This document shows, one piece after another, positions 9,264 through 33,244 of a stretch of 36,367 nt of DNA. Origin of the DNA: Neoconidiobolus thromboides FSU 785 (Eukaryota > Fungi > Entomophthoromycota); NCBI GenBank assembly GCA_025603075.1, contig MU626453.1:1-36367 (forward strand), given 5' to 3'. The position numbers and the translations under genes are program-made. A model generated the notes under the pieces. That model saw nothing but the letters and a program-made list of their open reading frames with translations. It did not search any database and was not told the DNA's origin. Numbering within the stretch: position 1 is the first letter of the stretch; each line of letters opens with the position of its first letter.

Positions 9264-10279
9264 CTTCTTCCCTATACGATTGGCTAATTTTGAATTCAGC
9301 TTTATATGTTATATTAAAAAAATATTCAATTTCTATTTTAACCATTATTTAATCAATACAATTCCTACAATTTCTCCTCAAAATGGAAAGTTGAATGTTC
9401 TTATCCCTATCATAGCTACAGTTTAGTTCTGACTATTGGTAATTTTTATAACTTTTTGCTTTTTAGATTTTTTTAAAATTGTACTATACCTTATATAAAC
9501 TAAAGTTTATTAATCTGTTAAAAATTATGATCGTTCAAAAGGAATCCCCAATCAAGTAAATTCATTAACTGTCTAGGCTTAGCTATAAAAACGCGCGTGG
9601 TCAATTAAAATTTCACTAAGTTTCTTTAGCTTAATAATTGTTGTTTCTAAATTTGAAATAATTTTGAATATTGAAGTTTTCTCCATAGTGGAGATGTCGG
9701 TTTCTGAATTAATTGGTTTGATGAGTAGCAAAGCCATTAGGCAATAGATTATTAAACTTTGTTATTTAATTTGTGTAACTTTAACCTTTTCAAAAGGCTT
9801 AAAATGATAAAACATTGCTTTAATAGCAAACATTATTAAAATAATCAATACTATAGTTCAAAAATACAAAAACCTAATACAATGTGTCATTATTAAAAAA
9901 AATCTTTTAAAAAACATTTGAAATAAATATTAAAACTTGATTTGTATTTAAAGCTTTTTTAAATTCTTATAAACGATTTTACAATGTGTTTAGGTTAAAC
10001 TAAGATTCGGTTTTTTCTAGCTTTGATTTTTTGTAAAAATAGTAAATTAGGGTTAGTTGCTATTTTGTAGCAATTTTTTTGCTCAGTTTAAAATTAGTGA
10101 ACAAATTTGCAATTTAAACTTTATCAATCTGAAAAATTATCTAATTTTAATCAAATTTTTACCTGCCTTAATTGAGTTCTATTTTCTCGCTAGTATAATC
10201 ATTTAAATCACCATGAATAACCTGAACAAAACTGTGTGATATTTAAAGAACTGGGAATTTCTTTATGCAATTAATATAT

Positions 10280-10374
10280 GGGGATGTATTTTTTGTTTAA
10301 GAATTTTACTACCAACTTTTCCGCTCAAATAGTGCTTAAGATAGAAAAATAATAAAGCCAAAAAAAATACCCCC
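10280..10374 (+). mobile_element. MITE-like element copy 3
   Basis: GGGGATGTATTTTTTG...CAAAAAAAATACCCCC; ATAT at 10276-10279 and 10375-10378. Confidence 0.85.
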
Positions 10375-10950
10375 ATATTAATTTTATTAAAATAAATTCA
10401 CAAAATTGTTAAACTTTACACTTTAGCCAGTCTCATTAGAGTTGTATAATATCTTGAAATTAACTCCAAAACAAGTAAGTTTAATATAAAATACCCATGA
10501 ATTATTTTATTGTTATTACATATTTTTATAGATAATAACTAATATGTATTTTAACAACAGATCAATGTTTAGTAATTTTCCTTTAGATAAAAGCCACCTG
10601 TTTAGGTTTAATAAAGTTATAATAAATACATGATTTAACAATACTACTCAAAGGCACGGGTAGCTTAATTTAGAATCATAAACTACTTGATATAAAAAAA
10701 GAAATAAATTGTTATCTCTCAAACATATCAATTATTTAGACTCCAGAAATATTGTAAGGATATAAAGTGATATATATTAAGATTTATTCATTTTATTAGT
10801 CAAATCTTTATAAACATATTATATTAAGAATGTGAAAGAGCAGAAAATAAACAACTCTACAAAATAACCTGACTGAGTTATTTTTAGGTTGATAACTAAT
10901 AATTTTAAGATTTGAGTTGTAAATGCTACATTTATTCGATAATTATATAA

Positions 10951-12263: not shown

Positions 12264-12357
12264 GGGGTTGTTTTTTAGTTTCATTATTTTTCCATTTTTT
12301 AAGCGCTATTTGAGTGCAAAGATTGTAGTAAATTCTTAAACACAAAAACACATCCCC
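12264..12357 (-). mobile_element. MITE-like element copy 4
   Basis: Reverse-complement full-length copy; AAAT at 12260-12263 and 12358-12361. Confidence 0.85.
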
Positions 12358-12423
12358 AAATAATTCGAGTTTATTTTTAGATTATTTTTTATAAACTGAA
12401 TTCAAAAAGAGTAAAAACTAAAT

Positions 12424-16679: not shown

Positions 16680-17628
16680 TTTTTAGTAGTATATAATAAA
16701 GGTAAAAAAGTTAAAGAAGAACTTAATGATTAAATCTATATTCAAAGTATTTCAGAAGAGCTTATATGTACTCTTTGCTTTTTTATCAAATAGATTTAAA
16801 GATAACAATATACTTTTTTTAATTTTTTATTTCTAGTTCTTCGATTTTTCATTCGAATTTTATTCATAAGTTTTGACCCAATCCCTGCCAAAGTATTTTG
16901 ATATTGACTAATCAAATTCGACATTAATTTATTCTTTGGACCAGTTGGATATATGGGATTTTATTCCAATTTTTAAATTAGAAAAGTGGTAAATATTATA
17001 AATTTGTATTATTTAATAATGTAAGTGTTTTAACTGTTTTAATTTCACTAATATCCTTGAGCTTTATATAGCAATAATTTAATATTGTTATTAAGAATTT
17101 TAATAAAAATAAAAGGTTATATATAAATGATTGTAAAACAGTTATTTATAGTTTAATCTTTTTTTATAAGGCACTGTAACTTGAGTTATATACTTAATAA
17201 CTCGAACATTACATTTATAAATTATTCAACTTTATTAAAAACTCATTAAATCACACAATAAATTGATACAATCGTTAAGCTAAAATTAAATATACTATTA
17301 AGTAATATAAACAAGCATAATTTCTAAAAAATTAGTAAAGACAGTTTTTCTAAAATATCACGAATATTCCTTTAATTTCACCTTTTTAGAATCCATATAA
17401 TAAAAAGATGTGTTTATTTTTTATCTACAGACTAATGCAAAATATTAAATATTGATATAGCTAAAACTTTGAAAAACTAACATTTAAACAAGTACAAGAT
17501 GTCTACGCTTTATATTGGCAAAGAAAGCAAAAATACTTATGAAATACAAATATAATTTAAAATAACCTATAATTTTCTTTTAAAAAATTTTATCACAATA
17601 ACAATAAAAAGTAATATTGTTAATATTT

Positions 17629-17725
17629 GGGGCTGTATTTTTGTGTTTAAGAATTTTACTAACAATCTTTCTACTCAAATAGCGCTCAAAAAATAGAAAT
17701 CAATGAAATCAAAAAAAACATCCCC
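17629..17725 (+). mobile_element. MITE-like element copy 6
   Basis: Full length; ATTT at 17625-17628 and 17726-17729. Confidence 0.85.
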
Positions 17726-17883
17726 ATTTAATAAAAAGTGTTAAAAAAATTTCTAAGTTTATTTTTAATTTTTTAACTACTAAAAAACTTAATATCCAAA
17801 TGTTTTAATAATAATTTTTGATCAAAAATATGTTAATATTTCAAAGCTTTTTCTGTCATGTATTATTGAAGCTTTTAAAATAT

Positions 17884-17979
17884 GGAACTGTGTTTTTGTG
17901 TTTAAGAATTTTACTAACAAATTTTCCGTTCAAATAGCACTTAAAATGGAGAAAGTAATGAAATCAAAAAAACATCCCC
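17884..17979 (+). mobile_element. MITE-like element copy 7
   Basis: Full length, left TIR slightly diverged; ATAT at 17880-17883 and 17980-17983. Confidence 0.85.
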
Positions 17980-18660
17980 ATATTATACCTGCTTTTATAA
18001 AGTGATGTATACTGGTTTAATTTAATTATATTAGAATTTTTAATTATGTATAACAAATAAATTTTAATGAATAATGTTTTAGTTTAATTTTTATTATAAT
18101 TAATGTATATTTTATTTTTATTTTTATTTTTATTTTTATTTTTTTTTCACTTTTTTATTTTTATTTTTATTTTATATATTAGGATATTTAAATACAAAAT
18201 TCAGATTTTTCAAAAGTTTAAAAAAAGTTGTCCTAAATTATTTTGCTTCAATTTTAATAATTTAATAGTTTTATTATTACTAGTATAAAAATTAAAATTA
18301 GTAAAAAACAGACTATTTTAAACTATATTTTTTAACATTATTATTTTTCATTAAAATCATACTGCTTTGAAAATATTTATAAAAACTTTAAGTATTTTGC
18401 ATTTATATTATTTAAAAAACAGCCTATATTTTAAGTTTTTGAATTATTATTTAATATATAGATATACAAATATAAATATAAATATAAATATATTTTAAAT
18501 TTTAAGTAATTATTAAAATATTATTAAAAATAATAATAGGCAATAATAAGTGTAATAATAAGATAAAAAACTATTTATAAAAACAACAGTTTGGAAATAT
18601 CAGATTAAATGATTAAAACAAAAATTAAGCATATTTGTTAAAAAATTTAAAAAAGCAATT

Positions 18661-18758
18661 GGGGATGTATTCTTGTGTTTAATAATTTTACTAACAAATT
18701 TTCTACTCAAATAGCACTTAAAAGTAGAAAAAATAATGAAGTCAAAAAAAACACTCTC
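18661..18758 (+). mobile_element. MITE-like element copy 8
   Basis: Full length; AATT at 18657-18660 and 18759-18762. Confidence 0.85.
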
Positions 18759-19360: not shown

Positions 19361-19442
19361 ATTTAAGAATTTTGCTAATAGCCTTTTCACTCAAATAGCG
19401 CTTAAAAAATGGAAAAGTGATGAAACCAAAAAAAAGGTTCTT
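19361..19442 (+). mobile_element. MITE-like element copy 9 (5' end eroded)
   Basis: Core ATTTAAGAATTTTGCTAATAGCCTTTTCACTCAAATAGCGCTTAAAAAATGGAAAAGTGATGAAACC; abuts copy 10. Confidence 0.75.
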
Positions 19443-19448
19443 ATATAT

Positions 19449-19545
19449 GAGAGTGTTTTTTTTAGTTTCATCACTTTTCTATCTTTTAAGTGCTGTTTAA
19501 GTGAAAAGATTGTTAGTAAATTCTTAAATCAAAAAGTACATCCCC
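19449..19545 (-). mobile_element. MITE-like element copy 10
   Basis: Reverse-complement full-length copy; ATAT at 19445-19448 and 19546-19549. Confidence 0.85.
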
Positions 19546-21275
19546 ATATACTATCGTATGAGTTTTACCATAAAATTATATAATTTTGAGCAAATATAAC
19601 ACAGTAAGGGCAGATTGGGATAGTCCATAATTGTCACTGTAATTTTTTTGTTTTTAACCAAAAAGTATATTACTGTTTCAACTAATAACGTATTTTTAAA
19701 ACTAAAATTAAATAAATTTATAACAAGATCTATATGAAGGATAACAGTGAGTTTATTTTCGAAAAATAATAGAGAAGGGAGGTTAATTAAAAGGTCATCG
19801 TATATAATTTAGTTATTGCTACAAATCCGAGAGCTAAAAAATATTTGATAATAACCTTATAATATTTAAAAAAAGAATAGAATTTAGTTTTACATTTTAA
19901 AGCATTAAGGTTTCATGGTATCATTTATTAATTTAAAAATAAATTATTCTTACACTGTTTGTTAGACTATTTAAGCTATATTTTCGAAATAAAATTATCA
20001 AAAATCGTTGTAATATCACATAACATTAAACCTAGTATATTTTGTAATGTTATTATTGATTTTGATCTCATTATTGATTTTGTAAAAAGTTCAAAGAGAA
20101 TTGTAAGGTTTATATCCAAAAAAAATTCTAAATGGATTATGCCATATTAATTAAATGGATTCATATATCATTTTAATATAATTAGTTAAGCCATTATTTA
20201 AAGGAACAACCTCCTTGTTTTAAATATAGTAAAGATTATTAATCTAATTAAAACGATGAGCTAAATTTTGTAATTTTTGAAAATAAACTTTGATAAAAGG
20301 TATTTGATTGGTTTATTTGTAAAAAAATCTCTAATTTTTTTGTATGTTGTTCTTTAAACCAAGGCTTTATGAAATAATTTATAAGAATTTGAGTAATAGG
20401 AAACATGATTTTAAAATTGAATCATTATTCTTATCATTAAAGCTTCAATAATTATAAACATCTTTCGTTATATTATTTTATGTAAAAAAATTAGCTTACT
20501 AATCTCTTTTTAACTACGGATACTAACTTCTTTTTTATAGATTAGTACTGGGGTCTTAAGATCGTCAAAATTGAACCTAAAAATACTTCAAGCTAGAAAC
20601 TGAAAATAGATTTAGTTTATTTTTAAGCCTTGTTAAATTTAAGTCATTCAAATAATTCATTCACTTATCGTAAATTTTAAGTTTAATTTATGCAGTTTTT
20701 TATGGGGTTAATTAGTTTTTTATCTTGTAATTATTAAAATAATATTTCCTAAAATATCTTAATTGACGTTTTATTTTCGTAGAAAAATGGCTTTAAGATA
20801 TCCACGGTTATTAATTTTGCAGTTTAGAATTAGAATGTTTCAATTCGACTTTACATCACCAAAAATAATTATAGTAATATTCAGAACTATTTGGCTTAAA
20901 CTTTACATAACTATCTCTAAACTAATTACTAATTACGTATTTATACTCATGGCTTATAAATCAATTCAATCAAAGTTCCTTTAACCAAAGGTGACCTAAA
21001 CTTTAAATGATTTCATTTATAATTAATGGGCATCTTAGTAATTGAGTTAAGTAAATTGCCTAAAATAATAATAAATCAACGTTTATTTTCTATAATTATT
21101 TATAAGTTAAATTAAATTTATAGTAAATTACCTAATGCTTTTTTCTAGATTTCATGAAATCACCTTGCTAAAGCTTTTCAAAGAGGATATAAATAGGAGT
21201 GAAAAATAAGAAAAAATAAATAATCAATTTAATCTTATATCCTACAAAAATATTACTCTAACATCAAAAACCAAT

Positions 21276-23502: not shown

Positions 23503-24162
23503 GATATCATCGATCTTTACTTTCCAAAACAAGAGAAATATAAAGTTGGTTTTATTATCTATGAGCACTTTACTATGTTGGATTTAGTAGGCCCAGCTGA
23601 AATTATAGGTGATCATCCAGATGTATTTGAGACTGTCACTATTGGTTTAGATGGCGATAGTTTGGTAAACTCATGGCATAATAGTTTGATTTATCATACA
23701 AAACTAAGTATCAAAGAAGCTAAGAAGCAACAGTTTGATCTAATAGTAACACCAGGAGGTGTAGAAGGAACTAATGCAATGATCGATAATAAAGAATTTA
23801 TTCAAGATTTCACTGAATTATATAACAACACCAAAGTAGTATTTACAGTTTGTACTGGTGCTTTAATTTTAGCCAAAACTGGATTATTAAATGGGTTTAA
23901 AGCAACTACTAATAAACAGGTGTTTTTCAAGAAAACTCCAGATTATCTTAAAGTAGATTGGGTCTATCATGCACGTTGAGTTCATCGTAAAAAGTATATT
24001 ACTTCAAGTGGTATTACTGCTGGTATGGATGCTGCACTTTATATTCTTACTTTAGTTAAAGGCAAAAAAGAAGCAGAAGAATTTGCTAATGTGTTGGAAT
24101 ATGTTGCTAATTTTGATCCAGATAAAGACCCTTTTGCTAAAAACTGCAATCAATCAAAATAA
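23503..24162 (+). pseudogene. Second DJ-1/PfpI paralog, probable pseudogene
   Basis: Frame matches gene 213-938 from DIIDLYFPK through MLDLVGP, VCTG and ATTNK. In-frame TGA at 23977-23979 replaces the Trp of RWIH; the frame then continues (KYITSSGITAGMDAA) to TAA 24160-24162. In-frame TAA at 23485-23487 and no ATG or signal peptide upstream of the homologous N-terminus. Confidence 0.8.
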
Positions 24163-24255: not shown

Positions 24256-25442
24256 TTAATCTTTTAAGCAAATTTTATTCGCTTTGAGTTGAATGTAGAT
24301 GTTACAAGCTTGAAATACTAAGTTATCTTGATGCATCAATACAGTAGAATTGATAACGTTATTTACTACTTCATATGGGAATGTATTTCTGTGTTTAAGA
24401 ATTTTACTAATAATTTTTCCACTCAAATAGCGCTTAAAAGATGGAAAAGTAATGAAGCCAAAACCCCCCCATATTTTAACAATCTCGCTCCATACTTTAT
24501 ATTGTAACCCTTATTTAAGTAATTCATTACCTTTTTGTTCCAATTAAATGGAATATTATTGTTATCTATTACCTAAAGCAATTTAAGCTATTAAATAAAA
24601 TATTAAATAAAATATACAAAACACAGTCTTTGACCTTTTTAATAAAATAAAATTTATATTCTTATTTATTTTCTAAATCTTTTCGTTCTTTTCATAGTTT
24701 TATAGCTTCTTTGACAACCTCCTACTGGGCCAAGTTACTTGTGATAACAAATATTGTGTCCTTACAGTCAATCATTTTATCCTAAAACAAACATCAGATA
24801 ACAAATCAAGGTTTGTGTAATCTATAGTTACCTTTCAATTAGTGACTCTTCTTCTTCAAACAAGTGTAATAAAGTAGTTAAGTTTCACTATGAGCTTTTT
24901 CGATTTCACCCAAGATAATGATGGTATTCAAAACTAAAACAGATGCTAATAACAAACAATTGATAATTAAAACAGCCTTAACTATTCTTCAGTTTCTCAC
25001 AAAATAAACTCCTATTGTCATAACCAACATTAACCCAGGGGGGCTCCAATAAATCTAGAATTTTCGTGTTTACTTTGATATTCAGACATATCTACTCAAG
25101 TCCATATTCACCACCATGGATGTAATAAGTTAATTTTTTTGCCAATCTAGTTTTTTCTATTAAAATATCGGATATTTTAAAGTTGTTTTTTTATACTGTA
25201 CATATGATACACTATTCACGCCTAAAGGCACAAGAAATAAAAACACCAAGGATCTTTCTGGACCTTGCCATCCTTACTGTTGGTTAGTTAATTCAGTGCT
25301 TGTTATATTATACATTATATAAATACCATTTTGTTCTAATTGTAGCAGATCCAATCATATCAATTACCGCCTTTTGACCAATAATCTTACCTTTAATATA
25401 AGATTTAAAAGATTTTTCTAGTTTCAGCCAATGAATAGTCCT
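24256..25442 (-). pseudogene. Decayed CLPB/Skd3-type AAA+ ATPase (single ClpB-like NBD), with intron remnants, interrupted by MITE copy 11
   Basis: Minus-strand fragments in the expected order: KIIGQ; GWQGPERSLVFLFL; KTRLAKKLTYYIHG; VDMSEYQSKHENSRFIGAP; VGYD; EIEKAH; LLHLFEE; IDCKDTIFVITSNLAQ; GYNIKYGARLLK(Y)EVVNNVIN. Two 50-nt GT-AG introns are recognisable; many stops and frameshifts; the segment expected between ~24670 and ~24570 appears deleted. Confidence 0.85.
24377..24470 (+). mobile_element. MITE-like element copy 11, inserted in the CLPB/Skd3-like relic
   Basis: ATAT at 24373-24376 and 24471-24474; excision restores the host reading frame. Confidence 0.9.
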
Positions 25443-25446
25443 ATAT

Positions 25447-25544
25447 ACCAAGATGTTTTTTTGATTCCATTACTTTTCCATCTTTTAAGCGCTATTTGAG
25501 TGGAAAAATTCTTAATAAATTCTTAAACAAAAAAATACATCCTC
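25447..25544 (-). mobile_element. MITE-like element copy 12
   Basis: Reverse-complement copy, one TIR eroded; ATAT at 25545-25548 and 25443-25446. Confidence 0.8.
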
Positions 25545-25758
25545 ATATCAATAATTTACTTTCGGAGTATACAGATTCCATTTTATAATAATAATATATA
25601 ATATGAAATAGAGATAAAATGAATTTCATTATCTATTTGTACTTTTTTAATTTTACTTTAACGTATTAAACTCTATAAAATTACTGAAGAAAGTTTAATA
25701 TAAAAAGCTTAATCTATTGGAAAAATGAAATTGAAGGTTTAATATAATAAAATAAGAA

Positions 25759-25921: not shown

Positions 25922-26019
25922 GGGAGTATTTTTTTGGCTTCATTACTTTTTCCGTCTTTTAAGTACTATTTGAGTAGAAAGATTGTCAGTAAAATTCTTA
26001 AACACAAAAATACATCCCC
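25922..26019 (-). mobile_element. MITE-like element copy 13
   Basis: Reverse-complement full-length copy; AAAT at 25918-25921 and 26020-26023; 42 bp downstream of tRNA-Gly. Confidence 0.85.
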
Positions 26020-26061
26020 AAATACTATTTAAAAAGTTTCAACTTCAATTCAAAATAGAAT

Positions 26062-26132
26062 TGCAATGTCCGGGAATCGAACCCGGGGCTGCCGCGTGGC
26101 AGGCGGCAATTTTACCACTAAACCAACATTGC
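26062..26132 (-). tRNA. tRNA-Gly (GCC), identical to 1992-2062
   Basis: Exact reverse complement of the first copy over 71 nt. Confidence 0.95.
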
Positions 26133-33149: not shown

Positions 33150-33244
33150 CTAGGCATGCCTTTTTTCAAAATTTTATTAAAAATTTTTCCACTCAAATAG
33201 CGCTTAAAAAATGGAAAAGTAATGGAATCAAAAAAAACATCACC
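33150..33244 (+). mobile_element. MITE-like element copy 15 (left part eroded)
   Basis: Right two-thirds matches the consensus; ATAT at 33245-33248 and possibly 33146-33149. Confidence 0.75.

Follow-up and report, generated by a model that had tools for sequence, protein, structure and literature searches.

How did a broken gene for a Skd3/CLPB-type AAA+ domain come to lie in the genome of a fungus, and what does it say about the age of the Skd3 family? In animals, Skd3 carries out disaggregation powered by ATP within the intermembrane space of mitochondria, and CLPB/Skd3 is a human disease gene. Here we report the analysis of a relic in Neoconidiobolus thromboides FSU 785, an entomophthoralean fungus that infects insects; a fungal host had been named in the original prediction, which was made from the letters of the sequence. 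The window, i.e. the whole stretch of DNA analysed (36,367 nucleotides), is contig C196 of the 24.6-Mb assembly of this fungus and is eukaryotic in character (~27% G + C, a tRNA-Ile(AAT), short GT..AG introns).

Extent and family of the relic

Three minus-strand frames combined yield a collinear series of AAA+ motifs from ~25424 to 24471 (IIGQKAVIDMIGSATIR, GWQGPERSLVFLFLVPLG, EKTRLAKK, VDMSEYQSKHENSRFIGAP, PWVNVGYD, NTIIILGEIEKAHSE, LTTLLHLFEEEESLIER, MIDCKDTIFVITSNLAQ and GYNIKYGARLLKY). These include all motifs named in the original prediction, which had also stated correctly that no listed open reading frame covers them. The broken Skd3/CLPB-type AAA+ domain extends firmly over ~24471-25424 of the minus strand, possibly continuing to a stop codon at 24256 (Table 1). 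The interval first proposed (24256-25442) therefore holds for this central part, and its remainder, 24256-24470, consists of a MITE-like repeat (24373-24470) and a tail whose similarity is not significant (score 25, attained in 421 of 2000 shuffles).

When the exons of the intact paralogue (K502DRAFT_350388, P0190; see below) were compared with the whole window by tblastn, matches with E values of 1.5e-7 (three linked pieces), 0.035, 2.4e-6 and 6.4e-7 were obtained. All of them are collinear (24471-25345) and correspond to one HCLR-clade AAA+ domain related to NBD2 of ClpB. As judged by sequence comparison, the motif set and the collinear matches exceed chance.

The family was assigned by piece-by-piece comparisons in which relic pieces and exons were kept separate. 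Summed per-piece scores were 438-512 against 19 Skd3-type proteins of fungi, protists and animals, compared with 370-386 against six ClpB/Hsp104-type proteins, N. thromboides' own included, and each individual piece scored higher against the Skd3 type. In searches of the PDB, CLPB homologue chains ranked first for the DMSEYQ piece (E 0.004) and were the sole matches of the GYNIKYGAR piece (E 0.0035, to the small domain of CLPB; no ClpB/Hsp104 chain); the Walker-A piece had no match. The single pieces are too short for the Pfam model AAA_2 and gave one weak Pfam match alone, that of the last piece to ClpB_D2-small (PF10431; E 0.017, 15.6 bits, under the cut-off of 21.9), and a six-frame AAA_2 scan of the genome did not detect the relic at E ≤ 0.01. 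In the alignment, the relic residues FQSKHE, EKAH and TSNLAQ are those of fungal and protist (Holomycota-type) members, not those of animals. Scores and PDB rankings agree with the initial preference for Skd3/CLPB, and the comparisons show that the relic's sequence is of the Skd3 family and not of ClpB/Hsp78/Hsp104; the human CLPB motifs cited in the original prediction are also correct in the alignment of the human and rat proteins.

Table 1. Features of the relic and its surroundings (positions in the window unless stated otherwise; i1-i6, introns of the AAA+ region).
Feature	Position	Strand	Remarks
Segment 1, linker and start of AAA+ domain (KLEKSF..IIGQKAVIDMIGSATIR)	25311..25424	-	12 of 31 residues identical to P0190 residues 248-280; frameshift then near 25330
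Intron i1, between KEN and GW, phase 1	25273..25326	-	remnant, 54 nt, GTATTT..TAAG; in Entomophthora, Massospora, C105
Segment 2, GWQGPERSLVFLFLVPLG	25220..25272	-	first half of ruined Walker A (GSSG to VPLG)
Intron i2, inside Walker A, between GVG and KT	25157..25219	-	remnant, 63 nt, GTGAAT..AATAG; in Entomophthora, Massospora, not in C105
Segment 3, (I)EKTRLAKKLTYYIHGGEYGLE	25098..25156	-	second half of Walker A (GKT to EKT); frameshift ~25095
Segment 4, VDMSEYQSKHENSRFIGAP	25039..25095	-	best PDB match a CLPB homologue, E 0.004; frameshift in C run ~25040
Intron i3, between GYI (GYV) and GYEE	25017-25052		cleanly absent from relic; in C105 (L019:4483-4534), Entomophthora, Massospora
Segment 5, PWVNVGYDNRSLFCEKLKN	24983..25046	-	degraded pore-loop region; orthologues' intron i3 absent
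Intron i4, between SKC and PNA, phase 1	24934..24982	-	remnant, 49 nt, GTTAAG..TTTTAG; position and phase as in C105, Entomophthora, Massospora
Segment 6, ILNTIIILGEIEKAHSE	24884..24933	-	ruined Walker B (LLDE to ILGE); frameshift ~24881
Segment 7, LTTLLHLFEEEESLIER	24832..24884	-	
Intron i5, between DGK and GT	24782..24831	-	remnant, 50 nt, GTAACT..TTTTAG; in C105; junction off by 1 nt
Segment 8, DKMIDCKDTIFVITSNLAQ, stop, EVVKEAIKL, stop, KERKDLENK, stop	24662..24781	-	sensor-1 TSN; in frame TAG 24722-24724, TGA 24692-24694, TAA 24662-24664
Unrecognisable stretch	24572..24661	-	~33 codons (ISEILYFLPF..NKWGKK), intron i6 and part of linker gone
Intron i6, between ATK and AKS			region deleted in relic; present in C105
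Segment 9, IDNNNIPFNWNKKVMNYLNKGYNIKYGARLLKY	24471..24569	-	probable small C-terminal domain, GAR motif; P0190-exon tblastn E 6.4e-7; PDB E 0.0035; PF10431 E 0.017
MITE-like repeat copy in relic	24373..24470		~90-100 bp, between ..LLKY and EVVNNVIN; TAT at both sides
Possible C-terminal tail (EVVNNVIN..LKD) and stop codon	24256..24372	-	similarity not significant
MITE copy directly upstream of relic	25459..25551		where ankyrin half should begin
Further upstream MITE copy	25932-26023		
tRNA-Gly upstream of relic	26062-26132		
Other MITE copies (examples)	1320-1423, 2115-2235, 10276-10379, 12273-12361, 17625-17714, 17880-17987, 18660-18747, 19362-19549, 33164-33233		

Decay, intact paralogue and introns

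With introns allowed for, the relic carries at least five frameshifts (near 25330, 25219/25157, 25095, 25040 and 24881), an extra 1-nt misfit at 24831/24782 and three in-frame stop codons, one of each kind (TAG, TGA, TAA). The frameshift at ~25040, within six consecutive C, might be a sequencing artefact; the others lie outside homopolymers. Of the columns covered by the relic, 73 are invariant among 19 opisthokont Skd3 proteins, and the relic deviates at 25 of these. Walker A is changed at four positions (G317V, S318P, S319L, G322E; GSSGVGKT to VPLG..EKT) and Walker B at one (D391G), and ~33 codons together with one intron have been lost between 24661 and 24572. Identity to P0190 is ~50% over 171 aligned residues, a region in which the living members are far more alike. 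With its frame broken and Walker A and B ruined, the relic cannot make a working ATPase; residual expression, e.g. as a non-coding RNA, may occur.

What is preserved is evidently a fragment of a Skd3 family member and not a whole one. Neither the ankyrin exons of the intact paralogue (tblastn; no ankyrin remnant) nor the N-terminal regions from 19 members of the family (no match at E ≤ 1) found a counterpart in the whole window, in line with the earlier remark that no ankyrin region is visible. The targeting signal and the short hydrophobic stretch are absent upstream of the relic, where a MITE and a tRNA-Gly gene sit.

An intact copy was reached by scanning the genome in six frames with Pfam and by tblastx. 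The product of this multi-exon gene on contig C105, annotated as 'hypothetical protein' K502DRAFT_350388 (P0190), combines a presequence and a hydrophobic stretch with ankyrin repeats, a single AAA+ domain and a ClpB_D2-small domain. One exon of the gene matches human-type CLPB chains in the PDB with 125 bits and ClpB with 72 bits, and another matches CLPB alone. It is the sole other Skd3-type locus in the genome, which also contains Hsp104/Hsp78-type genes (on C129 and C44), and presumably supplies the Skd3 function in N. thromboides. No synteny was found between the flanks of the relic and the C105 locus. The relic scores 483 against P0190 and 507 against the Entomophthora protein, i.e. it has no special affinity for the protein of its own genome, so that its parentage by the C105 lineage is a matter of what we infer; among the Skd3 proteins compared, no nearest relative stands out, the score differences being within noise. 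Linking its sensor-1 region to its small domain, the C105 protein has a low-complexity insert of ~55 residues, rich in Asn (L019:4890-5120), which is absent from all other aligned family members and from the relic.

Intron positions in the AAA+ region (six) were taken from the orthologues of Entomophthora muscae and Massospora cicadina, as read in genomic sequence. Entomophthora has all six and Massospora i1-i5, i6 being apparently missing. At the positions of these entomophthoralean introns, the relic retains four GT..AG remnants of 49-63 nt (i1, i2, i4, i5), as had been recognized in part from the letters alone. Removal of the i4 remnant joins the two frames of the relic cleanly, and the frames flanking the i2 remnant do not fit each other. 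Four introns at native positions identify the relic as a DNA-level copy of a fungal gene and not as a fully processed retrocopy or a contaminant, which upholds the initial claim of a native gene and leaves a semi-processed retrocopy as a minor rival (see below). Introns were lost separately, i2 by the live C105 copy (L019:4300-4360, compared with window 25157-25219) and i3 by the relic. The duplication is probably old because the two copies lost different introns after separating, the relic keeping the Walker-A intron since lost by the live copy, and because the relic is only ~50% identical to any living member.

The annotated K502DRAFT_350388 protein has 20 extra residues (…NG NHNIINNNEDEKNPNNFQL GW…) that are unique within the family. 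They correspond to 60 nt (L019:4226-4285 = C105:36225-36284; GTAATC..TTAG) that are stop-free in frame and located exactly at i1 of Entomophthora and Massospora, and probably represent an intron that the gene model failed to remove. A 'shared 17-19-codon insertion', considered as a derived character linking the relic and P0190, was dropped, since a GT..AG stretch exactly at the Entomophthora/Massospora intron is an ancestral intron and not a shared derived insertion.

Origin of the relic and its surroundings

The relic is very probably an unprocessed, non-functional pseudogene, namely the 3' half (the AAA+ domain with the small C-terminal domain) of a copy, duplicated at the DNA level, of the ankyrin and single AAA+ Skd3/CLPB-type gene that is native to this fungus. 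The copy would have been incomplete from the outset, without promoter, targeting signal and ankyrin repeats, or would have lost its 5' half later by rearrangement beside the MITEs and the tRNA gene; a long period of neutral drift under A+T-biased mutation would have followed.

The clean absence of i3, which is present in C105, Entomophthora and Massospora, and the lack of the whole 5' half, as in 5'-truncated retrocopies, would also fit a semi-processed retrocopy, formed by reverse transcription and insertion of a partly spliced Skd3 pre-mRNA from which i3 alone had been removed. We consider this improbable because the relic has kept four other introns, no poly(A) remnant was seen past the putative stop, and precise loss of single introns occurs also in live genes, the C105 copy itself having lost i2.

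There is even less reason to expect a live gene that merely appears broken through errors of assembly or sequencing, through unusual splicing or through a variant genetic code. One frameshift lies in the six-C run, and the in-frame TGA of the neighbouring DJ-1-like gene gave a first hint of TGA = Trp, but the intact C105 gene and a 908-aa open reading frame on C129 (= KAI9293440.1) read through in the standard code, and the relic combines stops of every kind, several frameshifts away from homopolymers, destroyed Walker A and B motifs, the loss of a third of the invariant residues, a deletion of ~33 codons and an inserted MITE. A code with TGA = Trp or TAA/TAG = Gln, suggested by the TGA of the DJ-1-like gene and a TAG aligned to Gln, was rejected since the long genes use the standard code and the relic holds all kinds of stop. 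Acquisition from an animal (insect) host, which the family's being best known from animals and the infection of insects by this fungus might suggest, is the most improbable origin of all, given that fungal Skd3 proteins follow the species tree with Metazoa apart (97/100) and that the relic has Holomycota-type residues and introns at fungal positions.

The MITE-like repeat occurs in at least 13 copies in the window and with 73 scored matches genome-wide, from 2993 first-look candidates. At 1992-2235 and 25932-26132 of the window, two identical tRNA-Gly(GCC) genes each have a MITE in the same orientation ~40-55 bp downstream, and the spacers at the two sites are unrelated, which suggests that the MITE targets the downstream side of tRNA genes, unless the arrangement is due to chance. 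Tail-to-tail with the relic lies a DJ-1/PfpI-like gene (23575-24162, plus strand) with an in-frame TGA (23977-23979) where the family has Trp (HAR, stop, VHRKKYITSSGITAGMDAAL) and a frame that resumes beyond it; this gene is likely a second pseudogene adjoining the relic.

Age of the Skd3 family and comparison with known systems

The origin of CLPB/Skd3 (ANKCLP) has been put in stem Holozoa, choanoflagellates or metazoans (papers 2015-2026: PMC4339202; PMC7343390; PMC13232346), a premise that the original prediction had quoted correctly, and our literature search found no paper linking CLPB/Skd3 with early-diverging fungi. The sequence databases contradict this statement by their fungal, aphelid and nucleariid orthologues. 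With the Dimargaris orthologue as query, full-length proteins with ankyrin, AAA_2 and D2-small domains were listed for the fungi Dimargaris, Dispira, Tieghemiomyces, Mycoemilia, Zancudomyces, Entomophthora, Massospora, Gonapodya and Hyaloraphidium, for other Holomycota (the aphelid Paraphelidium and two nucleariids) and for unicellular Holozoa (Corallochytrium, Creolimax, Ichthyophonus). The fungal groups with listed orthologues include Entomophthoromycotina, Kickxellomycotina and Monoblepharidales, and two of the database orthologues are already named 'caseinolytic peptidase B protein-like'. With an intact annotated copy in N. thromboides and orthologues in many early-diverging fungi, the novelty once attached to the relic is lowered: going by the database sequences, Skd3 is common in this lineage of fungi, and it is its wider distribution that is mildly interesting.

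A maximum-likelihood tree of 26 Skd3-type and six ClpB-type proteins, all of them database proteins, separated the Skd3 family at 100/100. N. thromboides grouped with Entomophthora and Massospora (Entomophthoromycotina; 100/99) inside Zoopagomycota (91/87), and Metazoa stood apart at 97/100. Since the fungal part of the tree matches the species tree, the Skd3 proteins of fungi result from vertical descent and not from transfer from insect hosts. A full-length Skd3-type protein in the transcriptome of the diplonemid Namystynia karyoxenos (EukProt; P0012) falls among the Holomycota sequences, which could reflect contamination or transfer, or else mean that the family is more widely distributed.

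The chances are about even that the pseudogene preserves what is left of an ancient additional Skd3 paralogue with the ancestral Walker-A intron and that, with the intact orthologues, it dates the ankyrin-CLPB disaggregase to at least the opisthokont ancestor, with later loss in most fungi. If so, ankyrin-CLPB was not invented in Holozoa or Metazoa, contrary to published statements. With Skd3 distributed across the opisthokonts, the family's origin moves back, and early-diverging fungi with Skd3 beside Hsp78/Hsp104-type genes are material for comparative work. The relic itself is of minor importance, being a further dead duplicate, with a live paralogue that is already annotated, in a genome rich in MITEs and in A+T; it adds to the history of gene structure that the two copies lost different introns.

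Among known systems, the AAA+ domain of the relic belongs to the same family as that of Skd3/human CLPB (ANKCLP), the AAA+ disaggregase of the mitochondrial intermembrane space, with which it has the motifs GW..PLVFLFLG, DMSE[FY]Q..HE..FIG, CKD.IF..TSN and GYN..YGAR in common. Unlike human CLPB, it is without targeting signal, hydrophobic stretch and ankyrin repeats, and its Walker A and B motifs are ruined and its frame broken. With NBD2 of Hsp78, Hsp104 and ClpB it has in common the HCLR-clade AAA+ fold and general motifs, but the per-piece scores are about a quarter lower than with Skd3-type proteins, and neither the first AAA+ domain nor the coiled-coil middle domain of that two-AAA+ plan adjoins the relic. 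K502DRAFT_350388 of the same genome has the intron positions i1, i4 and i5 in common with the relic, but is complete and has i3 and lacks i2, whereas the relic has i2 and lacks i3.
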